NCBI GenBank assembly: GCA_048013815.1
Contig: CM106586.1
Location: 12,462,001 to 12,526,000, forward strand
Source: Setoptus koraiensis
Lineage: Eukaryota; Animalia; Arthropoda
Reading direction: 5' to 3'
Length of the DNA: 64,000 bases
The notes under the pieces are model-generated. The model searched no databases and was not told the DNA's origin. It was given only the letters and a program-made list of their open reading frames with translations. Below are positions 3,370 to 21,494 of the stretch, in pieces (position 1 is the first letter of the stretch; each line of letters opens with the position of its first letter). Position numbers and translations under genes: made by a program.

Positions 3370-5027
3370 TTAACGTATACTAAATTGTTTCAGAACTGCC
3401 TCCAATTGAGCTATATCTCCAGAAGCGTAAGCAGCAAAAGCACTGTTGAATAGTACCAATTGTTTATGCATCACTTTGAGCTTGTTCTCATCAAGGAACT
3501 TCATTTTTATCTGGACGTCTTCACGTAACTGTTCGTAGCGACAACGAGCAGAATCAAGTTTGTCACTCGTGGCAGATACTGGGGATTGAGAGGTATGTAT
3601 CATACAATTAATGGAATTTCTTTCGGCGTCATACTCCAGTCGGGCTGTTTCGAATGCTCTGACTGTTATGAGTGTATCATCGATTGTTCTGGTGATCAAG
3701 GTAGATAAATTAGAACAAAAGAATCTTAAGGCAAGAATAAGTTTTTCACCATTCTTTGCCGAAATACTCAATGCCATAGCGTTCTTGCGAAAATCATCCC
3801 CAATATTGATTGTAGATGACATTTTGATGTGATTGAGGACTGGGGAAAAATCAGACTTCGCACCAGATTGAGATGTTGCCAACGATGTTGTAGAAGAAGA
3901 CGATGTAAGATTATTTGTTACGGCCATAGCATTCGTGTGACTGTGTTTGCTGGATCTTGCACCATTGCTATTGGAAGTAAATGAACCTCGATTGCTGCTA
4001 CTTCCTGATGAACAATACCTCATTGCCATTTCATTCATTAATTCATAGAGTTGACGCTGAGTTTGCACAAGCTGAGAGTATTGTACGTTCATTTGTTGGG
4101 CAGTTTTTAATATTACAGAATATTTTTGTTGGTTCTCCCTGAGTCTCTCGATATCGGCCTCCAATTGCACATCACTGGTTTTTGAGCATTTTCCTAATCT
4201 CTCATTGACTAGTTGTCTCGTACATTTGAATGTACTGACAGACCATTCTTTGATAGAGTCGATCGGCGATTGAGTGACAGTTCCGGAAGGCATGAGTTTT
4301 GTGACCAAGTTGACTGCATTTGTCACTACTGGAGATTTGCTGTTCAACATTCCATTACTCGTCGAGTGCATTGGTCCAGATAGTGTGGAGCTAGATGAAG
4401 TGATAGTAGTATCACCTGTTCAATATTGATGTTGCATATGATGGTGTGTAAATGATAAATAATATATAGATAATACAAAAATAAATGAAATATGTTATTC
4501 GTAGAGGCACATAGAGATTATAAGTTCATTTGGTCTTAAGGGTTACACCAATCTAGAGACAATCGTCGCGTCCATGCAAATGATATATGATATATGAAAA
4601 ATAGTATCTAGCTTGAGACAGCGACATGAGTGTCACAACGCCGATTACACAATGCACACTAGGAGAGAAATTTGATACTAATTGACGATATTCAAGATAC
4701 AAGAATAGCACTACAAAAAGGATTGTAAGTCGTCTTACCATCATGGGGATCTGGAAATGGTGATTCAGTTATTGTATTTCTGGGCATGGGCAACGAGGTT
4801 GGCCTAGACGAGTTAGATGTCGCAGATGCTGCCGTTGTTGTGGCAGTAATATTTGAGAAACCTGCTTGACTATTGGCCTGATTAGATGCGGAATTGCCAT
4901 CAATGTCGATGTCTAACATTTCATCGCCATCGTAGCTTGCATTCTCGTACGTGTGGAATGGCTTATTTGAAGTTGAAGTGACCGAGGATGAGCCGATTAC
5001 AGCTTGCCGGAAATTGGTTTCGTCCAT
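3370..5027 (-). CDS. ARFIP2: Arfaptin (ARFIP1/2-like BAR-domain protein), 2 exons: 5027-4739, 4415-3370
   Basis: Arfaptin-homology motifs KCTRQLVNERLGK, KNGEKL..ALRFF, ARLEYDA and DVQIKMKFLDENKLKVMHKQL. The GT-AG intron 4738-4416 joins the 111-aa and 333-aa ORFs in frame (PHDG-DTTITSSS...MHST). Confidence 0.9.
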
Positions 5028-5788
5028 TACGTGGATGAGTGAGTGATTCTTATTCTAGGCCAGTTGTTTACTTCTTCATAAATAGGGATACCTTCAGTGA
5101 GTAATACAGTTGTCGATGAGAGGGTAAAGATCGGTCATTTTGAAAATTGTCTGTTTTCAAGGCAAATTTATCCTGTGAGGGATTTTTTTTTGCAACTACA
5201 CACAAAATAGTTTTATACTGTCGCGATGAAAAGCCATTTTTCGTCTTCGAACGTGCAAAACAATCCTTTTGGATCAGATGGAGATTATTTTAGTTACTGG
5301 GTGAGATCTAGAGAAGAGTGCGGATATCCGCGCGGATACGGAACGGTCATATCGTGGGCCGTGTACGGATCGGTTCAGGTACGGGAATAATTGAGCTGGC
5401 ATGAATTAGAGGCAATATTCACGCATATCTTTTTATAGTTGGCATATTTTTAGGAATTGTTTCAAGTTTCGGGGCCTCTTTAATGGTAAACCAGTCGTGA
5501 TTGAGGTGTTTATGAGATAGTATTAACAGGACATCTTACAGCAAAAAGGTGTGAGCGGTGGATCGGACTAAGCGGCTGTGGAAACGCCCACCGCGACGCG
5601 GATTCGTTGCGGACCAACTGTGCTGAGATTCACTCTGTGAAATGTGCAGAGTATAGTAGCACTAGCAGTATTCACTGTGGATACGTAGCCTCCCCGGTTC
5701 AAAACAAATCTTGTTTGCGGTCCCCTAAAAACAAATCAAATTAATTGATTTACAATTGGAAACATATTCTGACCCCTAATCAAAAATC

Positions 5789-6146
5789 ATGGATTCAATT
5801 AGATGGCCGGAGAGATCAGCAGAAGGTAGGCACTTCAAAGATAATTTTTTGTTCTACTGTTATTCTAGCAACAATAATGACCTCTATCTTGATTTTTTTT
5901 CTCCTTGCAGCCAAAAGATTTGGTAGCCTCAAATTTTTCAAATGGCACCTCTATCACAATACTTCGAATTGCCTGCTGGCCGTTCTTTTCACCGTCACTA
6001 TGGGCGAACTGCTCTACAGATATAGGCAAGCTAATCGTTTGGTTCAAGATGGGAGATATCAATTAGGAGTTCTTAAAATGCGTTACACTGTTGTTAGACC
6101 TGATGATCCCATAGTAGAAAAGACCCCCGTTAGATACAGAAATTAA
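5789..6146 (+). CDS. Small single-pass membrane protein, arthropod NDUFA3 (complex I B9)-like, 2 exons: 5789-5825, 5911-6146
   Basis: The 85-nt intron GTAGGC...CTCCTTGCAG gives the ~90-aa product MDSIRWPERSAEAKRFG.... It has one TM helix. The C-terminal KMRYTVVRPDDP resembles the YVVYRHDDP tail I recall for Drosophila ND-B9 (recognition from memory, not searched). Confidence 0.5.
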
Positions 6147-6395: not shown

Positions 6396-7537
6396 TCACC
6401 AGCTACTTTTAGGAGTGCAACGTTTTTTATAATGATGCAGCAATATATCCAAATCTCTTTTACTCAATTGAACAGGATGGCTCTCGTCTTCAATAACACG
6501 AGCCGGCTCTATCTCATCGACATTCAGATATGCACTTCTATTAGGCTCTAGTGGGCATGTTCCGCCCAAATATTTAGGCACATTTTCCCTCGGTATATAC
6601 TTAAATATTTGCTCTCCGTTTGCAAATCGAAGTCGCTTTCTGTGTTTTTTATAAGTTGGAGATTGGATTGCAACAACAATTAGTGCACAGTAATCAATAA
6701 GGATAGATAGATACATGTATAGATAGATACATGTATATGTGCTCTGTGGTCTTCGTCTATTCTGAAAATTACTCACTTGTTCGTTTTGCTCAGCCAGTTG
6801 ACTGCAAGTTCCGATGCTGCTCTCAACGCTCTGGGCAAATTGACAACTAGAAAATAAGTTAAACCTTTCGGAAAGACATCCCTGAACGTACTGATGCACC
6901 AGTAAATGATTTGAAAATCAACTGATCTGAATCCAGCATCAGTGCAATCCAGAACCCACGTGACCCCGCGTCCGCCATTTTTGGTATCGACATCTGCCGC
7001 AACGCACAATATGTATTTCTTATATAATTCAAACAATTCGGGTACACGCCGATGTTCTTTGGCTCGCATCCAGACTGTTATGTTTCCGGCTATGTCGGGC
7101 TGATAGACAAATTCATTAGCTAACGTGTAGAGTTCCTTAGGAAAATGATGATAGTTTGCTTCGCTCATTTTGTATTGTTTACGGAAAAGGGCGAATTGTT
7201 GTAATAGGTCGCAAGCTCTTCCTGGATTCAATCTGCATCTCAATAAAAATCGTGATACACACCAATCGTCACTTAAAATTAGATCGTAATCGGACTGATA
7301 TATAGAGTTCTTGGCTAACTGTTTGAAACGCTCCTTGAATATCTCTCTTGTCTCCTCGATCAGTTCGGGTGAACAATTTTTGGTATATTTATATGTCGGC
7401 ACCTCAAATAGTTCCTCTGGCAAAAGGTTGATATCTGGATCAAAGTTGCTATTATCCCGACCGGATGGACAATCTTTTGATTGATTCATGGTCTTTATTC
7501 CGATATCGTCCTCAACGACATGAGCTGATGCTGCCAT
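6396..7537 (-). CDS. CRAL-TRIO/SEC14 lipid-binding protein (MOSPD2 N-terminal-like, no MSP domain), 2 exons: 7537-6777, 6639-6396
   Basis: DDWCVSRFL, VLDCTDAG..SVD, FPKGLTYFLVVNLP and IPRENVPKYLGG motifs. The intron 6776-6640 (GTGAGT...CACAG) joins the two ORFs in frame. Confidence 0.88.
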
Positions 7538-8077
7538 TTTTCAACAATTCCGTTTCAACCTTTAAAAAACTTTTTCTCGACAGCTCGTTAAAAATAGCAG
7601 GTACAGCTAAAGCTTTCCGCAGAACAGTTCTGATTGCGTTATACTTGTAAGCAAAAATTGTCAATGACCGTAGTAAGTTTGCTGACTTGATGCTACATAG
7701 TTTCAGAGACAGAGCTGATCTGAGTAAAGCCTTTCTTAGATAAGCTGAATCTCATGCGTTGGTGGATCCATCAAATTTCACATGTGAGATCAGAGAAAAA
7801 TCATGGATAACGTCATAAGTCAGATCGAGTTACAAAACTATCTACGTTGCCGAAAACTCTTGAAACTGACCGATCTTTCAAACCTATCTGGTATCGGTGC
7901 CAACAGATTTCAGGAGTACTCATATACCAATTGACTCATGGTGCTTACTCATTTTCGTACATGGTTTCAACATTACCCAAGAAAATTAAAAATTTGAAAC
8001 ATCATGCCTACAGCGAATGGAAGAGAGCTCGAAGTGATGTAAATATGAGGACGTCAATGGCTTAGACTCTTTATAAT

Positions 8078-8377
8078 TTATAATATTGCGTGCTTCTGGA
8101 GGCGAGATTTCTGATCTTTATTTAGGACCAGGTTACCACAGGTCAGACAATTTCCTGGGCCCTCTTTAGTGCATACTATCCGGCCACAGCCCAAACAATT
8201 GGCCACAAGTTCATGCTCCTGGGCTTCACAATCACAAGACTTTCGATTCTTCACTGATATGATAGCTTCCAATTCCTTGATTGCAGCTTGTTCTTCGCTA
8301 AGAAATTTATTTTTATTCTTCTTCGTCTTGTGGACCTTTCCCTCAGTTATGGGCAACGGATGTGGAACGATTGACAT
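8078..8377 (-). CDS. TRIP4: 99-aa protein consisting mainly of the TRIP4/ASC-1 C2HC5 zinc finger
   Basis: CDCEAQEHELVANCLGCGRIVCTKEGPGNCLTCG matches the zf-C2HC5 of ASC-1/Rqt4. No ASCH domain was seen downstream in any frame. Confidence 0.75.
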   Translation of the reverse strand: MSIVPHPLPITEGKVHKTKKNKNKFLSEEQAAIKELEAIISVKNRKSCDCEAQEHELVANCLGCGRIVCTKEGPGNCLTCGNLVLNKDQKSRLQKHAIL

Positions 8378-9057
8378 GGTGATTATATCGGTTGCTTCCT
8401 CAGGAAACGACAGAATGAGATGTTGAATGCCAGAACAAACGTTGCGTGTCGCTAAATATCGTTCATCGTGGCTTTTCTCTCATGTTCACCAATAATTATT
8501 TTCACTTTTTCTATGCGCCAAATTCGATTTCACGCGGTCCCTGTTACGCTCTAATTCTTGCAAAGCTTTGCCCGAGTTGAGCAGTTGAGCAGACGAGCGA
8601 ACACGGATTTGATGATGTTTTTACGCCAAAAAATACATGGTCATGGACAGACACAGACTGACAACTGTGAATACAATTTAGTGAATCGGTTTTTGGGCCG
8701 GCTGGACATTCACAGTGATAACAGCATGTCGGTTATTAGTCAGACGGCTCTGGCTGCCTCTGGATACATATCGAGATTCTCCACCAACTGCCTCGAAGTG
8801 TAGTAGATGAGCGAATTTGGCGAGCTAGCTGGTGAGAAAAGCTTCCAAAAAGGAACAGAAACGAGAAAAGTCCCCTTTAAGTGCGTTCGCTTCTACAAGA
8901 TAGACAAAAACAATGGGACCAATTGACGACAACTGAGGCCACTTTTGCACGCACACATTCCTCTCTGTGATTTGTGATACTCTCAATCAACTAGATACCT
9001 CTGGACGATGACATGAAAGTTGATTGTCGGGCAATTTATCGAAACAAACTGTCCGGT

Positions 9058-9063
9058 TTTATT
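9058..9063 (-). terminator. Polyadenylation signal AATAAA of the YAP-like gene
   Basis: AATAAA on the minus strand, 7 nt after the TGA stop at 9071-9073. Confidence 0.6.
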
Positions 9064-9070
9064 CACATGA

Positions 9071-10009
9071 TCACAAAAATTCTTCAATTTCTTCGGGTGC
9101 CAGATTTGGCAAGATATCGCCACCGGCGGTGGCTGGGTTGACCGCTTGATCGGCCGCCGGTAGGGCCGCACAAGCTTGACTGACCGGCGCATTCGAGCTC
9201 CCACAGCAATACGCCGGCTGGCGCTGGCCGGCGAAGCTCACCAAATGCGACATCACCGTTGCCGGTGATGTAATTGCTGCAACTGGCTGATGCAACATCG
9301 AACAGCGTCTGTGTGTATTGTTTGCCTGCAATAGTGACGATAGCCAAGTGTCTTGGCGATTGCACAAATTGGCTGCTGCCACCTGTTTGTTTTGATCCGC
9401 TGCCATCTGATGATGACACTCGTCAAACATTAGGTCAGACTCCAATTGGTATTGGTGCTTGCCATGCTGATGATCCAAGCGTCTCGGCGTGTCATTGTTG
9501 TAATTGTGCAAGCTATTGCTTAGTTGGTGACAACAACAATCCAGGTGAGCCGGGCCACCGTTGCTGGCCGATACTGTTGCTCGCTTCATGTCATGCTCAC
9601 TTTTTGTTGTCATTGTTGTTGTCGTGACTAGAGTATTGTTACTCTTTGGATAATTATAATTGTTTTGTTTATTGTTGTTTATTTCACTAAACGAATACTG
9701 ATTTATTGACGACAGAGAATCACAGCTGCCCATAGGCAATCTCAGCAGCGTCGTGTTACCTGTGGCGCCCCCGCCAATCAACATACACTTCGGCGCGGTG
9801 CTTGTGGGTTGCGGTTCGAAGAACGACCTCGGCAACTGACGTTGCCGCATTGGCAAGCTAGCTCGCCGTACCGTTCCGCTCGCTCCGGGCGTCAAGATGA
9901 AAAAAAGTTCCTCTAGGTCCCTCATGGCGCCTCTGTTGGCCTGCTGTTGCGGCTGTTGTTGTTGTGGCTGGTCGTTGTTGTCGATGTTGACACAATTACT
10001 TTGTTGCAT
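9071..10009 (-). CDS. YAP/Yorkie-type TEAD(Scalloped)-binding-domain protein lacking WW domains, single exon
   Basis: RGAMRDLEELFFILTP...LPMRQRQLPRSFFEPQP aligns to the YAP alpha-helix (DLEALF) and omega-loop (PMRLRKLPDSFFKPP). The remainder is low-complexity Q/N/T/H-rich sequence with no WW domain. Confidence 0.75.
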   Translation of the reverse strand: MQQSNCVNIDNNDQPQQQQPQQQANRGAMRDLEELFFILTPGASGTVRRASLPMRQRQLPRSFFEPQPTSTAPKCMLIGGGATGNTTLLRLPMGSCDSLSSINQYSFSEINNNKQNNYNYPKSNNTLVTTTTMTTKSEHDMKRATVSASNGGPAHLDCCCHQLSNSLHNYNNDTPRRLDHQHGKHQYQLESDLMFDECHHQMAADQNKQVAAANLCNRQDTWLSSLLQANNTHRRCSMLHQPVAAITSPATVMSHLVSFAGQRQPAYCCGSSNAPVSQACAALPAADQAVNPATAGGDILPNLAPEEIEEFL

Positions 10010-10830
10010 TGTTTGCAGATATCACATGCACAATCTAACACAACTGACAGTCGACAATTGCCGCTACCCAGCAACAACAACAACAACTACTACTACATCT
10101 ACAAACGATCAACACTGTCTGTTGTGTGTTTATCTGCAACAACCGGCTGTCATTTCGCCAACAACTACTATACACTGCTGCCTCCACTCTTTTACTCCTG
10201 CAGCTAAATTTTACTGGTCGTGGTGCCATATGCTCCTGATGTATATATATTTATATATTTAGCTGTAAGTGGTTGCTAGTAACACAATTTCCACAACACG
10301 AAATAGTAAAACTAAATACAAAAATCACCTTCACACAGCTACCTCGATGACGACTAAACTTTACGATGGTACTGGTGTTGCGTTTCAGACAGTGTCAGTC
10401 ATTGTCATTGCCACTGTTACTATGCCCTAGCAAACAATATTCAATTCGTCAAGTATGGATGAGATACCAGGATACTCTGCTCTTTCAGTGAGTGCAGACG
10501 CTGATAATATTTACCAATTTTGGGAGAGCTTTACTCAAAAGAATTCCTGCTATCTACAATACTAAAATGAATACAGAATAAAAATCTTGATCTATAATAT
10601 TATTCTCAAAATCAAAGTTTTTCGGTCTCAAAGATCACGACAGCCAGATCTCACAAAATTCCGAGCTCTAGTGGTGATATACAAATAGTGATGAAAGAAT
10701 TTTAAAATGTTTTATATCTGAAATGGGCGAAAACTCGAGCCACACAAATTAACCATTTATCATAACCATTCATCACACATTTTTCATTATTTTGGGCGGC
10801 CTTTGTGATTTGCAGAAAATAAATATTATA

Positions 10831-11250
10831 TTATTCATTATCCGCGTATTCATCAGTGCAATGACAAATGGCTGGTTTTGAATGAGGATTCCCCAGTCTG
10901 AAACGTTGCACTATTGACTCCATATTAACATACACACCCCTGGTGTATTCGTTTTCTTTGCAACATTTATCGCATTCAACCTGTTTCTTGAACTTGTCCG
11001 GAAAATTGTTAGCGGGTTCTTCCTGTTCTTCGACTCTCGCATCATTGCTTGAATCGCCATCAGCTAGCTCCGCTTCGTCATGCACTGAACTATCCAGCAC
11101 TGAATGCTCGCAAATAGTATAGTCTAAGGCCAATTTTAGACCGATGCCTTCAGCTGCATTGGTATCGTCCAGTGACATAGTAATAATGGCAACAAGTGAC
11201 AAACAAGTGATCACAAACAAGTATTGTGAAGAAAATTTCGGATAAATCAT
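10831..11250 (-). CDS. Orphan secreted cysteine-rich protein (139 aa)
   Basis: ATG-initiated with a hydrophobic signal peptide (YLFVITCLSLVAIITMS), an acidic spacer, and six Cys in the mature region (C ... CxxCC ... CxC). Confidence 0.65.
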   Translation of the reverse strand: MIYPKFSSQYLFVITCLSLVAIITMSLDDTNAAEGIGLKLALDYTICEHSVLDSSVHDEAELADGDSSNDARVEEQEEPANNFPDKFKKQVECDKCCKENEYTRGVYVNMESIVQRFRLGNPHSKPAICHCTDEYADNE

Positions 11251-12370
11251 TATTTAATCTACTATGTTGGTCGGTGAGATGTTTAATTGATTGAATATCT
11301 ACGCGCTCTCATTAATTGTGTATTGATTGTGTATAGTTGATTGTAATTTAGCTCATTCAGATGAACAATGATATAAGTATAGAGCTATTATTGAATTTTC
11401 ATTATTAGAAAACAATGATGTGTGATTTGATATATCTTTTCATATGAAAATAGACTCTCTGATATTCAACCGAATGTGCGCACCTGAAAGCAAGAGGCTA
11501 TTTAAGTGTTAGAAAAGGGGATGCATTCTCTGCGAATGTGATGTTTTTATTATTTCTATATAAGTTAATGATGTAACCACCAAACAACCAACCAGTCATC
11601 TATCATCTATTTTTAACTCTATTCTATGTGCGATAAAAAATATGTGTAAGCTCTAACAATGAACCCGCAACAAAAAGATATATCTTTTATAGGCACAAAG
11701 CATCATGAGACATCCATATTTATAAAAAACCACCACAGAAAAATGGAAACATATTGGATTCAATTTTTCAGCATTGATTTCCAGCTCTCTGGTGGAATAA
11801 ATAACACTCAAACCGGTCCATCAAACAATGATGAACTCACAAATGCATGTTGACTCGTAGAATTATAGTTAAACAACAATTTATAGAACAGTAAATTTAG
11901 TATTTGAGAATAATCAAAAGGGAATCGGCCCAATCATTCACTATAATGAACATATAATGTTACGTAGTCGATTGAATGCGGTTTTAAATCCATTCAATGT
12001 GAGAGGACGGCCTCTGCGTTATCCATCATCGCGCTTGCATAGCTTGGCAAAAGCTATAGCTTCAATAGTAATAGACCACATGAACTCATAGCAGTTCATT
12101 ACATAATTACTAAAATTGTCTATTTTGCCTGTATTTGTCGTCGGCAGATCGCTCAAAGGTCCTTGTATAGGATCTATCTTGCTTTCGGTTGTAGACAAAG
12201 AAGACGATAAACCATATAAATCTACTCCATTGAGAATACTGTAAACTTATGTTTCACGGGTAAGATGTTACTCGGAAACGACTCGTCTTAGTGAGTCGAC
12301 AAAGAATCAATTTTTTATAGCACAGAAATGTATGAAAAACTGATGATTTTTTTAGAAAGAGAATAATAAT

Positions 12371-14777
12371 TTATAGGTAGGACATTAGATATAGATCTTG
12401 TGCTTTAGACTCTAAAGTGGCAAGATCACTAACGAGAGTCTTAAGCTGGTCCACATGACCTTCGTAGGTATGACTATTTTCCAGACGCTTGCCCCCGTAA
12501 GTCACTTTTCCATCATATTCATCTACTTGAATTCTAAAATTGGCATCGATTTCTTGAATTGTACTTTTGAGATGTTCTTCTATGTCGGCCAGTAATTGTA
12601 ATTCATCGTACCAAATGCAACATCCTCCTCTATCAGTAAGATTTGTGTTGTGACAATTGCGATTATTCCGACAATTACAGTGATACCAAACCTTTTCTGG
12701 AACAGTGGAGACAAAACTTAGGGCCAAACCCATCCTGTCCGCTCGGCCCACGCGGCCTATCCTATGCAAATAGTTTGCCTTCTCATCTGGCAAGGTGAGT
12801 TGCAATACAAATGGTATACCAGTAACGTCTATACCTCGGGCAGCAACATCAGTGCAAATTAAAAATTTTACTTGTGTAGCTTTGAATTTGGCCAAGTTAT
12901 TTTGACGCTCCACTGGTTTCCTATCGGCATGAAGGCAAACACAAGAATATTTATCATTGTCTCGGGCCTGTTTTCCCAATGATATGAAATAACGCTCTAA
13001 GTTGTCACAGTCTAGCTTAGTTCGACAGAAAATTATAGCTTGGTCCATTTTGAGGGCATCTATAGCCTTCACAACATGATAACACTTGAGTACTTTCAGC
13101 GCCTCACTCAGCTCCTCTTGATCATTAAGGTGCCTTTTTTGAAGATTAATCCTATCATTATAATGCACACCATCTGTCTGGATGGGTGTGCTGAGAGCAT
13201 ATTGGAGTACATCATGTTTCCTCGGATCCACCCTAAAGACAACATGATGAACTGTCTCTGGCACCGAATCCTCTCCTTTCAAATCGATCCAAATGGGAAA
13301 ATACATAAGACGCTCGGCTAGTTTTTTCACCTCGAAATTGTGTAATGTGGCCGAGCAGCAGACAGTTTGAACTCTTCTGCCATCGTATGACATCCTAGGA
13401 ACCATATCATGAAGTCGAATGATCAAAGAATTGTGACCATTCTGAAGTAGGCCATCCGCTTCATCCAAAACGAAGAACCTGATATGATCAAGTAGTATTT
13501 GTTGATTTCTAATCACCTCATCAATTTTTCCTGGCGTTGCCACAACTATGTCAACTCTCATATCGAGGTTATTTGTATGGTCGCTGTGACCTCCTGTGAG
13601 TAATACAGTTTTTATATTGAGACCCTTGGAAAATGATTCTATACATTTGTAAGTTTGTTCGGCCAATTCTCGGCTCGGTTCCAAAATAATGGCCAATGGA
13701 TCTTTTCTTGAGGCTTTGTTACTCTTAGAAGATGAATTGTATGCCTGTTCAGCTTCCGATACAACGACTTGATCCTTGTTTGCTTCACTGACCCAAAGGC
13801 AATCGGCTGGCTTGTGGTCGTTGGGACCGCCAGATTCTCGCTCGAATCTAACTTTACAGCCGGCGTTTTTGACGCATATGGAAGGAAAGATGCCATTTCT
13901 ATCAAAAGATCTCGGATCTATTCTGAAAGCAACACCAAGATTTCTGCCATTTTTTGTAAAAGTTATCTCGCCAGTGTTCATATCGATGATACAACCGACA
14001 ATATCGAACTTTTCGCCAAAAGTTAAACCATAATCCTTGAATTCTCTTGAATTGCTCTTTTTGCCAGTGCCTCCATAACCCCAGCTAAACTTGTCGGTCC
14101 CCAAGTCAAAGCTGGCCTTTTGGTATGACCAGCCAACTCTGGCTAAGCCTTGCTCGTTAAAATGAACTTCATAATAGAACTTCAGCTGTTGTCGGGGCGG
14201 GCCTGGGACCTATATAGAGAAAATATCAAATGTTTTCGAAGATGAAAATGTAAGAACGTTGCATCGCTAAAGTATACAGTTTGGATGTTCCAGCAGTACC
14301 CTTACCATTCTTAGACCGCGTGTTGCTCTACATCCTTGCCAATTACCCGATTTGCTATGGGCTGTTAGATAGTCACTGCTCAATGCTAGATCCTTCGCTC
14401 TGTCGGTGAAAGAGAGGCACCACTCTCTGCCGGTCTGAGACGAACCACTGAACTTGTCGGAGACAACCCTCTTATCATTAATAGATTCCCAAACAACTTG
14501 AATGATGGGCAGACAAAAAGCTCCCGTCTTGCCCGATCCAGTCTCAGAGGCCAAGAGTACGTCTCCGCCACCCAGAATTAATGGAATGGATTCTGCTTGT
14601 ATCTCGGTGGGGAGAAGCCATTCTAGTTGCTCTACACAATGAGCTATCTCGGGCATAATTCCTAGTTCTGTGGGACCGATGCACATAATTTGTTACTATT
14701 ACAGTCAACTTAAACATTAAACTAAAGAATCGTATCGGGAGCAGAACAGTACGCGACTTACCTTCGAATGCTGCCAT
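12371..14777 (-). CDS. DDX1: ATP-dependent RNA helicase DDX1 (DEAD box with SPRY insertion), 3 exons: 14777-14762, 14667-14306, 14209-12371
   Basis: MAAFEELG N-terminus, [26 protein letters not shown] (KFYYEV, RVGWS, LGTDKF), DEAD motif (LDEADG), [15 protein letters not shown]. Both introns are canonical GT-AG and in frame. Confidence 0.97.
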
Positions 14778-16483
14778 CTTTTCGACCCTATAAGCTCGGA
14801 CTAAAAATTCGGTGGACTGGAAGTCTTTGGCTACGTTTTTTTTAAATCAACATTCATATACTGGATATCTTTCAGGGAGGTGAGACGCTAAACGCCGAAA
14901 GTTTAATTTGTTTACCAACTTTGGACTTTGATGCTCTATATCAGCGCGAAATTTGATTCCCGAAACTCGGTTTGAGCTCGCCGACGATTACATATCGGCC
15001 CCTGTTGCTGTTATAGCACTTGTACTAACGCTGCTCGGAGATCTAAAAATCACTTCTTCAATGGTTGATACAAATTAGATAATTGAACCAGCCCCATCCC
15101 TCTATCTGATTATGACTATTCCAATGAACAATATTGTTACTATGATATCCGAATGATTTCTCGTTCATCCTCGCTTTTGAAAGGAAATAATCAATCTATT
15201 TTCACCTCTGAATTCGACTAGAATGGACAATAATAATTAACATCTGATGGGGTTCTGCGAGTATAGTGATGAGAAAAAGCCGAGTGGGTGCTTTGTATCA
15301 TGATTGTACATGATTCGATACTATGATCCCCATATGTATAGAAATTTCTTTCATGTCGAGCACTTGGTGGTCTTGAAGAAGTCTCAATTCTTTCATTTTT
15401 CCCACATTTTCACCTGATGATTTCGATAAATAAGACGCTACTTGCAATGATAGTGCGCATTTTCTCCAAACAAATGAAGCAAGTGAGTTTGTTTTCAAAT
15501 AAAATCGGAATAAAATACATAATCAGAAGTCTTGGCCGTTGATAGGATAAAACATGTAACTGGCTGATCAACGACTACACAACTTCTCTATTACACCAGA
15601 AAAATTTGATTGATGCAGCCGCTCACTCCAGCTGAACTCTGCACACTGCTCAAGGGATTCTCTCATTACATATGTACTAATATTATCGTCATCAATGCTA
15701 CTGATTCGTATCTCATAATGATGATGGTGACACATTTCCTCTGCAATCTCTACCGTTAATCTTTTGTTTGTGTGTTAGCATTTGCATTTGATCAGTTATT
15801 ATACCACCATTAAGGAAGATATGATTGATTGCGTCCTCCATAGTCATTCTCACGCATTAAACAATAAGCAAGCATATGCTTTCATTATTATTATCAACAT
15901 TCACTGTTGTTTGAAACTACGACACATCTCTCCCACTCGTTGACACCTTAATCTTACTCTCTATTCAATACCTTATGATGGCACAGAGGACATAATGCAT
16001 TTCATTTATATTACTACAATTATTATATTACAGTGAGAAACAAATACCAACATCAACAAGTTAGATAACTATCAATCAATTTTGTTAGGTTTCAATTGGA
16101 TCTTCTAACAATTAAAGTGATATTGCAAATCCGTCAAACGGTCTGTGATGTGCCAACGGGGGGGATACAATGAAATATGACTCATCGACAAGAGAGCAAC
16201 TATTTGAATATTGTACATTGTTGATGAGATCTACTTATCATTAGATAGCCCGGCGATAGCAATTCTTACATAAAATAACTAGTGCTAGATAAATACATAA
16301 TCTCTGGACAACATACTACTATTGCATATCACATCAAACCATGATATAGACACCCACTCCTCTCTATTGCTATATTCACACAAGCCTACCAGATGTTGAT
16401 TTTTATTGTCCAACCTAGTCAAATTCAGATCAAAATAGATTGATTGTTTTCTTTCAAGAAGCATTTCACACATTCACACAAGT

Positions 16484-17923
16484 ATGAGCGAAAAATCATC
16501 TGGATCTTATGACTATGATAGTGGCGATTCATCACATACCGAATTATTCAAACAAGCCAACAGTGGTAAAGATGGTAACCTTTCAGAACAGATCAACATC
16601 AATGTTGAATTCACCAGTAGTAACGAAGATAGAGTAATTAATCAAGAGAGCAACACTTGTCATCTTAGGGCCAAATGCTTGCAGTACCTTTATTGTTCAC
16701 CATGCAAAGATGTTCTACCTGAAATGGTTGATGTTACCAACGAAACTTGTGCCTTCATAGATTCTACTAATACCAGGCCCAAAGTGATGGTCGAAACTGA
16801 TAAAATTGTTGTTCTGGAACTAATTGCCGCCAAGCTATCCGATTTCAAAAATAATGTCGTTCCTAACCCACAATACTTAAGTTCTCCTACAAGATTGTCG
16901 CCCCAGCATAAACCACAAAATCACAACAATACTAACAATCATTTACTCAGTAATGGCTTAGCAACGCCAAAACCTACTACATCTCCATCAACAATCACTT
17001 CTAAACGTTACGTTAGCTATACAATATTAGTGAAGAGGGTACCCGGTTTAGATAGCCATCCAGCTGTGATAGAAAGGAGATTCTCCGATTTTTTAATTCT
17101 GTATCAATCATTGAAGAATAGTCCTTCTCACGCCGACTACTTGAAAGGAACTATAAGTTTTCCCAAGAAGATATTGATGGGCAATTTTAATGTCGTAAAT
17201 ATAGCGGACAGAAGTGTGGAGTTTGCCCGTCTGATAACATTGTGTATAAGGAATAGAGATCTTACCTGGTCTCCAGCCTTTGTATCATTTCTGTTGGACA
17301 AGGAATTGAGGGAATCGCACAGAATGGTTACATGTGAGAATTTGGATGAGGCTCAAGCTGCCATTGAGAATGTATATTATACCCTAGAGAAAGTGTATCT
17401 GAATATCATCAAGTGTCCATCTGACTCACCGGTTTTACTTACAACTAACAACGGTTTTATTATCAACGGTAATTTCTCATGCCATGATTCATCTATAAAC
17501 ACCTCATCGAACTCATTTGAAACCAATGTAACAACAAGCAATCATAATGGTATTTCAATCAAGGAGGATGATTTTCTAATATACCTATTCGTTAGGATAT
17601 TGTCTACCTATTGTATATTAGTTGTTATATATTTCAAAGGGGGCCTACTAGATGAGCTATATAGGATTTTAAATGACTTTTGTGAATTGATCTCGACTCA
17701 AATATACTTCAGACGTGTAAAAGTCTCACATGGTTCTACGGTGAGGACCTTACTCTTGTTATTATCGAGCTTCAAGAATCCTATCTATGATAAGCACAAA
17801 TCTACAGTTCAATTGTGTCTAAGTGAGTTGGGTTCAACTAACGGCATTGCTTCGGTAAGCTTTGAGACGCGATTTTCAGAGCTACTGACCATTGTCACTG
17901 GTAAAGAGTTTCTACCTTGTTAG
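16484..17923 (+). CDS. SNX21: Sorting nexin 20/21-like PX-domain protein, single exon
   Basis: PX motifs YVSYTILV, IERRFSDFLILYQSL and FPKKILMGNF...IADRSVEF, followed by a helical PXB-like region. Confidence 0.8.
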   Translation: MSEKSSGSYDYDSGDSSHTELFKQANSGKDGNLSEQININVEFTSSNEDRVINQESNTCHLRAKCLQYLYCSPCKDVLPEMVDVTNETCAFIDSTNTRPKVMVETDKIVVLELIAAKLSDFKNNVVPNPQYLSSPTRLSPQHKPQNHNNTNNHLLSNGLATPKPTTSPSTITSKRYVSYTILVKRVPGLDSHPAVIERRFSDFLILYQSLKNSPSHADYLKGTISFPKKILMGNFNVVNIADRSVEFARLITLCIRNRDLTWSPAFVSFLLDKELRESHRMVTCENLDEAQAAIENVYYTLEKVYLNIIKCPSDSPVLLTTNNGFIINGNFSCHDSSINTSSNSFETNVTTSNHNGISIKEDDFLIYLFVRILSTYCILVVIYFKGGLLDELYRILNDFCELISTQIYFRRVKVSHGSTVRTLLLLLSSFKNPIYDKHKSTVQLCLSELGSTNGIASVSFETRFSELLTIVTGKEFLPC

Positions 17924-18722
17924 GCCCCATGTGCTCGTAATGTTGAGCCACACCAACTATTAACATATCCATTTATAGAAGAGAGAGCAGAATTAATTAA
18001 TAAAGCGAAACAAGTCCGTTTCCCGGTTTTATACTTTGTTACATCATGTTGATTACTATTCAATCACGATTGTTGATGGCATCGGATAATCATTAATGAG
18101 TACTACTCATTGAGTAGCAACAGACATGATGGCGTTGTCAAAAAGTTTTTTGACTAACTCAAATTGAGTTTTTGCAATTTTAAAGCAAGCGCCAGGTTGC
18201 GGCACATGCGCAGCTGGACACAAGCGGCCAGTTGTTCATAGTTGACGTGTTGCTGCCGATCTTGCGTCCACTCGTTCGATCATTGCTCTGTGAGCATAGG
18301 CACCGACGCCGACACCGACACACACACGCACGGTACAGTTGTACTATCTATACATAGAGAAGAAACTGACACACAGGCATAGAGCGAATATGTGTTGTTT
18401 TTTACTAAAGGATGATACTCATTTGATGATGATCATTTTGCTCATTTCTGCGGAAGTTCACAATAAATCCTCATTATCTTACATTATCCACAATAATTAT
18501 TATTAGCAATTTAGCATAATTATTCTTGTTGTTATTATTATCGCCGCTAGGAGTCGACTGTATTAATAATCAATTAATGTGTTTGTATTTTTTCATGAGA
18601 ATTCATTAGTGTTCTCAGGGGAACAATCTCAACAACAACAACAACAATATTGCACCACCAATATCGTCAACAATCCTATTCTATTTACATACGCATACAT
18701 ACACACTCACAACACAACAATC

Positions 18723-19577
18723 ATGTTTACCAAACAGACATGGCGACTGCTCTTTATTGTTTTAACGGCCTCATTGGCTTGCCTATTATCCACCACTCAC
18801 GTAACATTGGCTGCAGATGATGCTGCCCCCGCCTCAGCCGACGAGCAGGCTGCTGGTGCCGGTTCCGTCAATGTGGAGCAAGACGAGCCCGCCTTGGATG
18901 TGACGCCAACGGATTTTGATCTAGCTAATGGGCCACAATCATCTGACGATGCAGATCTTAGTTTTGTTTTCACCAGGCCCGTCATCACCGGCAAACCCTA
19001 CGAAATGCCCATTGGCAAAGAGGTACACTTTTTAGTTGGATTCAAGAACAAAGGCCAAAAAGATTTCACTATTAAAACAATGGACGCATCGTTTCGTTAT
19101 GCGCTAGATTTCAGTTATCATCTGCAGAATTTCACAGCATTCCCATATAATAGACTTGTTGAACCACAACAAGAGGCTACGTTAGCCTATACGTTCTTTG
19201 TTAGCGAGGCTTACGCCGCGCGTCCATACGGTTTCACTGTCAATCTATTATACTCAGATAAGGATAATGTGCAATATCAGAGCGCTGTATTTAATGAAAC
19301 TGTCACCTTGGTTGAAATTGACGACGGACTAGACGGTGAGACATTTTTCCTATATATTTTGCTTGCCGCTTTTGTCTGCTTAATAGGAGTCGGATTAAAC
19401 CAATTATATAATTCGTTCATAAACAAAGGTGGCCGCCGTCAGTCGTCCAAGCCAAGAATAGAACAAGAAAAGACGAAACAAACTAGTGATGTCGACTATG
19501 ATTGGCTACCACCAGCAATGGTTGCTAATCTTAAAAAGACCTCAGCAGGCTCTGTACGAAAAGCAGCACCAAATTAA
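18723..19577 (+). CDS. SSR1: Translocon-associated protein alpha (TRAP-alpha), single exon
   Basis: Signal peptide from ATG 18723 and an acidic N-terminus, then FLVGFKNKGQKDF, ASFRYALDFSYHLQNFT, QEATLAYTF, DGLDGETFFLYI (TM) and VDYDWLP. Confidence 0.96.
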   Translation: MFTKQTWRLLFIVLTASLACLLSTTHVTLAADDAAPASADEQAAGAGSVNVEQDEPALDVTPTDFDLANGPQSSDDADLSFVFTRPVITGKPYEMPIGKEVHFLVGFKNKGQKDFTIKTMDASFRYALDFSYHLQNFTAFPYNRLVEPQQEATLAYTFFVSEAYAARPYGFTVNLLYSDKDNVQYQSAVFNETVTLVEIDDGLDGETFFLYILLAAFVCLIGVGLNQLYNSFINKGGRRQSSKPRIEQEKTKQTSDVDYDWLPPAMVANLKKTSAGSVRKAAPN

Positions 19578-19757
19578 TTTCTACATTAATTTAAATAAAG
19601 ATGATTTAGCTAAATTAAATTTATGCCATCGTGTGTCATCGATACATTAGTCTGTTATTGCATCCTTTAAACAACAGGCTCAAAAGAGATGACCTCTCCC
19701 AACAATATACAACTCACAAAAAAAAATATACAATATACAACTGGGGTCATTTGTGCA

Positions 19758-21245
19758 CTAATCGAAATAGTCATCGATATCTATTGTTCCATCGATTAAT
19801 TGCTCACCGTATCTGCTCACATCGATTTGATCGTTGATTAGATTTTCAAATGTTTCTTCTAAGCCAGTATCACCAACCAGCACTGCACCTTTTAAACGGC
19901 CAGCATGTAGCACCAGTTTCACATAATCTTTAGGGGGATTAACTCTCACGATAATTTCGTGATTCACTAGGTTTTGGCCATTGAAACATCCTAACAGGAC
20001 GACTTTGTAACCAAAAAATCTGGTAATATGACTGAAGCACTCAAAGTTGGAATAGATACTCGGATCTCTGCCATGCATATGATCAACTATGCATCTGGCC
20101 GAGTAATATCCCATTTGTCTTGCATGTGTCCATAATCTCATTTGTGACCAAAGGGTTTTTATTGGCCAGCGCTCACAAGAAACTACATCTCCAGCGGCGT
20201 AAATGTCTGCAACTGATGTTCTCATTTGTGTGTCTATCAGGAGGCCACCACCGTCCTTGGTACTTCGTTCGAGTGGGTTTGATAATTTAATCCAATCTGT
20301 GTTGGGCTCCACACCAATCGCGCATACTATTATATCACATTCGATGCTCGTACCATTGGTAAGCTTCACTTCGACAGGCCATTCTCCTCCTATATCCATG
20401 GCTTTAACCTCTAGTAAACAAGTAGACTTTTCTATTCTGAGATTATCTTGAATTGTTCCTGTCTGACTGCAACTACCAAAAAGTTCGAAATCTTGTATCC
20501 AATCTGGCCCGAGTGCAGAGTTAAAAGTTTTGATATTGCTGCTTAGAGATCGTTGTTGGGTGTTTGTGGAAAATTGAAAACTTTTCTTCATAGAAACTTC
20601 ATCATCTTCTATCACATCGCCTTTTCTGTTCTTCTTTAATTCCAAGCTATCAAGAAAAAACTTCGCCGCTCCTGAATCAAAGAAAGTCGACCCTATAGAA
20701 TCTTCTCTGATAACCCATACTATTTGACATTTTTTGATTATGTAGGCCAGTTCGATAGCGATGCCTCCATTACCAACTATAACTATTCGCCTTGAGGATT
20801 CCAACTTGGATTTCAATGTTTCGACAGTTTGGGTGTCGCGAATGAATAGAATTCTACTCTCCAATTTATTTGATGATAACTTAAGAGGAAATCTCTTCGG
20901 CTTGGCACCTGTGCATATACACAATTTAGAGTATTTCAGTTGACTAGACAATTTGTCTGAGCTAAAGTTCAAGAAAGTAAGCAACTTTTTTTCGATAATT
21001 AGATCTTTCACCAATCCTAATACCACTTTTACATTTTTTCCAAAGAATTCATTATGTTTATCTGTTGCATCGATCTCCTCAACAACAAAATCCTCCATAT
21101 TTATTCCGATCCTTCTGAGGTTCCTGGTAGCTTTAACTAGTTTAGATAAGGTGATAAGTACTATCTCCCCTTGATAGCTCTCTGCTAAAGTTAGTGCACA
21201 TGTCGTGCCGGCTATGCCGCCTCCAACTACCACGACCGGGTCCAT
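19758..21245 (-). CDS. PYROXD1: Pyridine nucleotide-disulfide oxidoreductase domain-containing protein 1, single exon
   Basis: GGGIAG FAD motif, GNGGIAIEL NAD motif, WSQMRLWTHARQMG, FSHITRFFGYKVVLLG and the C-terminal IDIDDYFD. Confidence 0.95.
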   Translation of the reverse strand: MDPVVVVGGGIAGTTCALTLAESYQGEIVLITLSKLVKATRNLRRIGINMEDFVVEEIDATDKHNEFFGKNVKVVLGLVKDLIIEKKLLTFLNFSSDKLSSQLKYSKLCICTGAKPKRFPLKLSSNKLESRILFIRDTQTVETLKSKLESSRRIVIVGNGGIAIELAYIIKKCQIVWVIREDSIGSTFFDSGAAKFFLDSLELKKNRKGDVIEDDEVSMKKSFQFSTNTQQRSLSSNIKTFNSALGPDWIQDFELFGSCSQTGTIQDNLRIEKSTCLLEVKAMDIGGEWPVEVKLTNGTSIECDIIVCAIGVEPNTDWIKLSNPLERSTKDGGGLLIDTQMRTSVADIYAAGDVVSCERWPIKTLWSQMRLWTHARQMGYYSARCIVDHMHGRDPSIYSNFECFSHITRFFGYKVVLLGCFNGQNLVNHEIIVRVNPPKDYVKLVLHAGRLKGAVLVGDTGLEETFENLINDQIDVSRYGEQLIDGTIDIDDYFD

Positions 21246-21494
21246 TTTCGGTTAAGTATGAAATCTTGATGAATGTGTCAGCAATGCCATGGGGCTTGGT
21301 CTCTTTTACATGATATAAATGTAAGATAAAACAAACCAATGAGCTGAGGAAATGCGTTTGACAAAAACATCTGTATCTGTCAGATGTGTGAGTGGAGTCG
21401 CCTCGAAACGATGCCGCATGGCCTTCATCAGCTGTTTGATTTCACAGAAGTGTTAGCTAACACCCGATTAATCTTTGACCCCTAATACTGCAAA
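21246..21494. promoter_or_regulatory. Short bidirectional promoter shared by PYROXD1 and IBA57
   Basis: Only 249 bp separate the two divergent ATGs. Confidence 0.6.

Follow-up and report, generated by a model that had tools for sequence, protein, structure and literature searches.

A putative YAP-type TEAD-binding protein lacking WW domains and Warts/LATS sites in an eriophyoid mite: a candidate Hippo-insensitive Scalloped cofactor

Within a 64,000-nucleotide (nt) stretch of the genome of the mite Setoptus koraiensis (positions 12,462,001 to 12,526,000 of contig CM106586.1, assembly GCA_048013815.1; hereafter the window, with positions counted from its first letter), an unbroken open reading frame (ORF) of 312 codons on the minus strand (9071-10009) encodes a protein which combines a complete YAP-type TEAD-binding domain with the absence of the elements by which the Hippo pathway controls YAP and Yorkie. 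Phosphorylation by Warts/LATS, and contacts between WW domains and PPxY motifs, normally set the activity of these co-activators. Judged from its sequence, the locus is best read as a protein-coding gene without introns, belonging to an eriophyoid (gall/rust) mite, and there is a strong case that its product would dock on TEAD/Scalloped via interfaces 2 and 3. With modest confidence, we favour the view that the protein truly serves Scalloped as a Hippo-insensitive cofactor and descends from yorkie; we infer its expression, its binding to Scalloped, its role as activator or competitor, and its derivation from yorkie.

The ORF and the AATAAA close behind its stop were put forward in an initial annotation of the window, and both stand: the 312-residue frame runs from ATG to TGA on the minus strand, and the poly(A) signal follows after a gap of 7 nt (9063-9058). 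An in-frame stop lies 5 codons 5' of the ATG, and the next 600 nt upstream are closed in the frame of the ORF. Openness of the 939 nt was retained in only one of 2000 dinucleotide shuffles, and the codon log-odds of this frame (0.039) was the best of six, the other five ranging from -0.09 to -0.28. Given that intronless genes make up 84% of the total in the eriophyoid Aculops lycopersici (PMC7738191), a single-exon gene is the rule here.

The YAP helix and omega loop recognized by the initial annotation were likewise recovered, with DLEELF at residues 31-36 (DLEELFF at 31-37), supplying the LxxLF motif required at interface 2 (PMC7784741), and LPMRQRQLPRSFFEP at residues 52-66. The loop matched the Pfam omega-loop family TEADIR3 (PF15238) with an E-value (E) of 1e-4 and 22.8 bits, over 15 of 16 profile positions. 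When residues 22-70 were compared with PDB chain sequences, the top nine matches were all YAP1 TEAD-binding peptides (E 0.003-0.014), followed by FAM181A (6L9F, E 0.05), and the YAP1 alignment spanned helix and loop together with one single-residue gap. As read from this alignment, all 12 of the contact or fold residues named in an earlier study (PMC7784741) are kept: L65, L68 and F69 of human YAP correspond to L32, L35 and F36 in the mite protein; P85, M86, R87 and R89 to P53, M54, R55 and R57; L91, P92 and S94 to L59, P60 and S62; and F95 and F96 to F63 and F64. YAP V84 is replaced by L52, a common substitution, and P99 is shifted by one residue (Q67, P68). The helix-to-loop linker measures 15 residues between F36 and L52, compared with 14 in human YAP and 4-15 among animal YAPs (PMC7784741). 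At YAP position 86 the mite residue is Met and at position 96 Phe, both as in YAP; Trp is found at position 86 in TAZ and beetles, and at position 96 in FAM181A (PMC7784741). The charge dipole described for YAP in the same study recurs here, with an acidic helix start and a basic loop start. In the residues upstream of the helix (QQQANRGAMR), an RG pair lies one residue off register relative to YAP R58-G59, and the alignment to the interface-1 strand is not significant.

Outside this domain, the initial annotation claimed that neither a WW domain nor an HxRxxS site is present, and our scans agree. Pfam returned no WW match at E<=10 for the 312-residue protein, which contains a single Trp. A six-frame scan of the 64-kb window for W-x21-W, or for W-x19-24-W-x2-P with a central aromatic pair, likewise yielded no WW-like motif: W-x21-W strings were few and unlike WW domains, and on the strand of the ORF none lies downstream of it. 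A motif scan of the protein found no HxRxxS/T, HxKxxS/T or PPxY, and Pfam gave no match at E<=10 to the Tondu domain of Vestigial/VGLL proteins (Vg_Tdu). In the YAP1 alignment, the LATS site S61 falls opposite A28, and HSRQAS, just past the loop, falls opposite STAPKC. Basophilic sites are limited to RRAS51, of the RRxS type rather than the HxRxxS preferred by Warts, and HRRCS237, in which His occupies position -4, not -5; a regulatory role for RRAS51, directly before the omega loop, can only be inferred. Because these motifs are missing, established knowledge of the pathway suggests that the protein would escape Warts, 14-3-3 and PPxY partners alike.

The remainder of the protein offers few landmarks. 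Single-sequence AlphaFold2 modeling gave a mean predicted local distance difference test (pLDDT) score of 34, with no domain and helices of at most 7 residues, and the whole 312-residue protein is predicted to be intrinsically disordered, leaving the TEAD-binding domain as the sole recognizable functional element at the sequence level. Gln, Asn, Ser, Thr, Ala and Gly make up 48% of its composition, and Pro plus Glu 9.9%. Near the N-terminus, a Gln-rich stretch (residues 14-23) is encoded by a CAG/CAA repeat, where unrelated contigs pile up in depth spikes of about 30-fold with many loose ends; differences reported there, such as a 1-nt deletion at 9973, are unreliable. The C-terminal tail (GDILPNLAPEEIEEFL, residues 297-312) is acidic and hydrophobic, the last 32 residues carrying a net charge of -6 and ending in DILPNLAPEEIEEFL, and is a candidate activation motif. 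A zinc-binding role was considered for a Cys/His-rich block at approximately residues 166-206, and rejected, as no other block is so poorly conserved between the two copies of the gene described below.

These features suggest a mechanism in which a yorkie ancestor would have lost the region bearing its WW domains and Warts sites, and then undergone recent duplication. The LxxLF helix (L32, L35, F36) would occupy the interface-2 groove of Scalloped/TEAD, and the omega loop (P53-F64) would engage interface 3, where R57 and S62 may reproduce the salt bridge and hydrogen bonds of YAP R89 and S94. Devoid of WW domains, the protein would be unable to engage Warts, Expanded, Tgi, Wbp2, NcoA6 and other partners bearing PPxY; devoid of HxRxxS, it would be neither phosphorylated by Warts nor parked on 14-3-3, so the Hippo kinase cascade should have no bearing on how far it occupies Scalloped. 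As YAP can work by way of its WW domains or, alternatively, its C-terminal activation domain (Zhang, Grusche and Harvey, PMC3281119), a WW-less protein would need an activation region of its own. The output would more likely be weak or alternative activation, via the Gln-rich stretch at the N-terminus and the acidic tail at the C-terminus, and less likely mere competition for the Scalloped surface.

A second copy of the gene is evident in contigs from two other samples. Four sequencing runs, all represented by DNA contigs and covering intergenic DNA as well, were examined over positions 6500-12000, and these two samples yielded both the window's own sequence and a second form approximately 88% identical to it. 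No run containing this stretch was on record as RNA. Similarity to this form stops at the poly(A) signal downstream, and upstream it takes in a TATA-like element about 240 nt 5' of the ATG, which is a candidate core promoter. The best reading is that recent duplication gave rise to two copies. Of 125 differences between them, 40 were listed, and the listed substitutions all fall outside the binding domain. Among the listed indels, to which a full listing would add another twelve, those in the ORF (-6, +3 and +3 nt, and a 121-nt block replaced by one of 106 nt, or -15) are all in frame (4/4), compared with one multiple of three among eight in the 5' flank (Fisher p ~0.01). From the listed substitutions, the region outside the binding domain appears to change at an approximately neutral rate, while its frame is preserved.

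Several observations weigh against a functional cofactor of yorkie descent. Among the 40 of 125 differences listed, 27 codons are changed non-synonymously and 8 synonymously, and the three codon positions are hit 10, 15 and 15 times; substitutions outside the binding domain thus look near-neutral, and would fit decay too. The coding score of 0.039 is lower than that of nine other genes in the window (housekeeping, 0.125-0.194), and the GC content of 0.51 is atypical beside 0.38-0.43 in the same nine. The TEADIR3 score falls below the curated cut-off of 26 bits. A word-index protein search with the whole protein found no homologue, an exhaustive phmmer search of 1.84 billion representative proteins returned 0 matches at E<=0.001, and none of 228 pattern matches in a JGI metagenome scan was related. 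Finally, Drosophila Yorkie exerts its output mainly via its WW domains, its C-terminus being dispensable (PMC3281119), and a WW-less form may be a poor activator. The word-index search with residues 22-75 also found no homologue, only one candidate sharing words, and feature searches of the ESM Atlas, run on the full-length sequence and on residues 22-75, gave no usable match. The protein collection searched was without this genome, as exact look-ups of the YAP-like protein and two neighbors found none of them on record. These blank searches say little, because a 40-residue motif is unable to reach significance in such libraries. The unusual base composition might reflect gene conversion between the copies, amino-acid composition, or recent origin. 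GC content at third codon positions is 0.55 in this ORF and 0.37-0.47 in the nine other genes.

The alternative that survives best is an eriophyoid orthologue of PERCC1 or FAM181, families in which WW domains were never present; it would use the same interfaces 2 and 3 and imply no uncoupling from Hippo. Sanchez-Pulido et al. (PMC9710580) define a YAP/TAZ/FAM181/PERCC1 superfamily by these common interfaces, and describe consecutive interface-2 and interface-3 motifs (LxxLF, PxxxRxLPxSFFxxP) in PERCC1 and FAM181B. The initial annotation had treated FAM181 and PERCC1 as vertebrate binders, which does not hold: FAM181 is reported from annelids and molluscs, and PERCC1 homologues from chelicerates (PMC9710580), which makes WW-less ancestry a live rival. 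It gains further from the rank of FAM181A immediately after YAP1 in the PDB search, from the matching Pfam family having been built on FAM181, and from both families being small, of low complexity and hard to detect, as is the mite protein. Against this, the mite domain begins at residue 28, leaving no space for the conserved N-terminal helix region that precedes the motifs in these families; the 30 residues before the helix are Gln/Asn-rich, and judged by description they hold no FAM181-type helix region. The spacing is YAP-like and not the 54 residues which separate LxxLF from the loop in FAM181B (PMC7784741), Met at position 86 and Phe at position 96 are as in YAP, and the protein has neither Pro/Glu richness nor a predicted long helix or coiled coil. 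We therefore consider an origin within PERCC1 or FAM181 unlikely, and favour yorkie descent on the strength of the N-terminal position of the domain, its YAP-length linker, and the residues at positions 86 and 96.

Less probable again, and in our estimate rather improbable, is that both copies are decaying or without function, possibly duplicated leftovers from the 5' part of yorkie that are still open and whose motif has not yet eroded. The near-neutral tally of non-synonymous and synonymous changes, with no excess at third positions (in the 40 of 125 differences listed), the 121-nt block that cannot be aligned between copies, the weak coding score and odd GC content, and the lack of relatives in the word-index, 1.84 billion-representative and metagenome searches are all as decay would have it. 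Yet the four listed ORF indels all keep the frame, whereas the listed flank indels mostly do not; a frame of 939 nt stays open in only one of 2000 shuffles; and the 12 key binding residues are intact. Near-neutral rates are, moreover, common in the disordered regions of real regulators.

In most animals separate exons encode the YAP binding domain and the WW domains, and the ORF might on that ground be the initial coding exon of an ordinary yorkie, spliced to WW-encoding exons located elsewhere. This is very improbable, and the initial annotation had already called a missed downstream exon unlikely. AATAAA lies 7 nt past an in-frame stop; the 693 nt from there to the next gene on the same strand (zf-C2HC5, start at 8377, some 0.7 kb downstream) are filled with stops and closed in all three minus-strand frames; the 64 kb are free of WW-like motifs in every frame; the second copy ceases to be similar at the poly(A) signal; and eriophyoid genes are mostly intronless (PMC7738191). 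A chance ORF or chance motif was rejected on the shuffling result and on the single occurrence of the helix-plus-loop pattern in the six-frame translation of the window, and the small probability that remains falls to chance or something else.

The features of the locus and its neighbors are collected in Table 1. Immediately upstream of the YAP-like gene is an orphan ORF with a signal-peptide-like hydrophobic N-terminus and several Cys residues, and beyond it DDX1. Downstream, the zf-C2HC5 ORF contains only the TRIP4/ASC-1-type finger, and no ASCH-domain ORF is evident between it and the next gene, which encodes a CRAL_TRIO protein; it may represent a truncated or spliced TRIP4.

Table 1. Features of the YAP-like locus and neighboring genes (window coordinates; residue numbers refer to the 312-residue protein).
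Feature	Position	Strand	Basis or remark
Coding sequence, 312-residue protein	9071..10009	-	ATG 10009-10007, TGA 9073-9071; ORF listing, coding log-odds, shuffles
TATA-like element TATATAAATA (minus strand), candidate core promoter	10240..10262	-	Sequence reading; inside block common to second copy
Gln-rich stretch, residues 14-23	9941..9970	-	Sequence, composition
Putative TEAD-binding domain AMRDLEELFFILTPGASGTVRRASLPMRQRQLPRSFFEPQP (helix, linker, omega loop), residues 28-68	9806..9928	-	One-gap alignment to YAP1 TEAD-binding peptides
Interface-2 helix, residues 31-37 (LxxLF: L32, L35, F36)	9899..9919	-	Sequence, PDB alignment; LxxLF requirement PMC7784741
RRAS51, basophilic-kinase-type RRxS	9857..9868	-	Motif scan
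Interface-3 omega loop, residues 52-66	9812..9856	-	Pfam TEADIR3, PDB alignments; residue roles PMC7784741
Cys/His-rich block, approximately residues 166-206	9390..9512	-	Unalignable between copies; 121 nt and 106 nt
Acidic-hydrophobic C-terminal tail, residues 297-312	9074..9121	-	Composition
Poly(A) signal AATAAA	9058..9063	-	7 nt past stop; alignment to second copy stops at 9058
Similarity to second genomic copy, ~88% identity	9058..10415 (approximate)		Contig alignments; loose end at 10415
zf-C2HC5 ORF, 99 residues	8078-8377	-	Pfam E 8e-13
CRAL_TRIO protein gene	6773-7537		Next gene past zf-C2HC5 ORF
Orphan ORF, 139 residues	10831-11250	-	No Pfam match
DDX1	12371-14686		Upstream of YAP-like gene

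The best named matches to DDX1 are from mites, Tetranychus urticae (57%) and the eriophyoid Aceria tosichella (58%), and so low an identity to Aceria indicates that eriophyoids are highly divergent from one another. A search with DDX1 also recovered a Logan contig from a close relative (L001; 90% amino-acid and 80-84% nucleotide identity) and a more distant one (L002), and no TEAD-binding motif was found at the locus in either. Collinearity between L001 and the window breaks exactly at the DDX1 stop. Positions 1-3179 of L001 correspond to window 18179-21386, a collinear block comprising TRAP-alpha and Pyr_redox_2, and positions 3522-5852 correspond to window 14686-12347, so that the DDX1 block is inverted and relocated. 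TTC5 adjoins DDX1 in L001, with no counterpart beside the DDX1 of the window. Comparison of window 12347-21386 with L001 points to a recent rearrangement, with a putative breakpoint at the DDX1 stop.

Eriophyoid mites are among the smallest arthropods. The genes fat, dachs and four-jointed are absent from Aculops lycopersici (PMC7738191), a precedent among eriophyoids for erosion in the Fat branch upstream of Hippo. A bolder version of the favoured reading, which we regard as possible though less than likely, holds that the sole Yorkie of eriophyoid mites shed its two WW domains along with all its Warts sites, then duplicated, and serves as a Scalloped co-activator outside Hippo kinase control. 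If so, these mites would provide a natural case of a bilaterian in which the link from Hippo to Yorkie is cut, possibly tied to extreme miniaturization and fixed low cell numbers. Were this the only Yorkie of the mite, growth control would be rewired in a miniaturized animal; were a canonical Yorkie also present, the protein would be a lineage-specific constitutive partner or competitor for Scalloped. Either way, it would offer a compact natural reagent, a TEAD binder of about 40 residues with its own linker, and the gene sets a clear test of the extent to which the Hippo pathway survives genome streamlining. Should it prove to be the PERCC1 or FAM181 of a mite, the claim becomes an ordinary one. 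We regard the gene as a good lead, with rewired growth control not yet proven.

Set beside known TEAD binders, the mite protein resembles YAP1, TAZ and Yorkie in the N-terminal placement of its domain, its LxxLF helix, short linker and omega loop, the retention of key contacts, and in having as its best sequence matches the YAP1 peptides of YAP-TEAD crystal structures. It differs from them in lacking WW domains, HxRxxS Warts/LATS sites, a 14-3-3 site and PPxY, the equivalents of S61 and S109 being A28 and a non-site; it has no recognizable YAP C-terminal domain or PDZ-binding end, and its remaining sequence cannot be aligned. With FAM181A and FAM181B it shares a WW-less, mostly disordered constitution and an omega loop (TEADIR3 E 1e-4, FAM181A peptide 6L9F E 0.05), and with FAM181B also the LxxLF motif; in FAM181, by contrast, the motif lies mid-protein behind a conserved N-terminal helix region, the spacer is 54 residues (FAM181B) rather than 15, and position 96 is Trp (FAM181A) rather than Phe. 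PERCC1 is likewise small, WW-less and of low complexity, with consecutive interface-2 and interface-3 motifs and a conserved equivalent of Ser94, but it has a conserved N-terminal helix, centrally placed interfaces 2-3 and a conserved C-terminal region, and is Pro/Glu-rich with a predicted coiled coil, neither being evident in the mite protein, which we set apart by description. Also likened by description are two choanoflagellate proteins, from Salpingoeca rosetta (XP_004994687.1) and Monosiga brevicollis (A9UXI0), which carry a YAP-like TEAD-binding region, described as similar to a good degree to that of metazoans, without WW domains (PMC7784741); these lie outside the metazoans, are of uncertain kinship to YAP, and show no evidence of a secondary loss of WW domains. 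Of the Hippo-insensitive TEAD binder proposed by the initial annotation, the complete YAP-type domain and the absence of WW domains and Warts/LATS consensus sites stand at the sequence level, and a stripped-down Yorkie is the likelier reading beside a relative of PERCC1 or FAM181. We file the mite protein, provisionally, as a YAP-type, WW-less and LATS-site-less protein within the YAP/TAZ/FAM181/PERCC1 superfamily, rather than as a proven orthologue of Yorkie.

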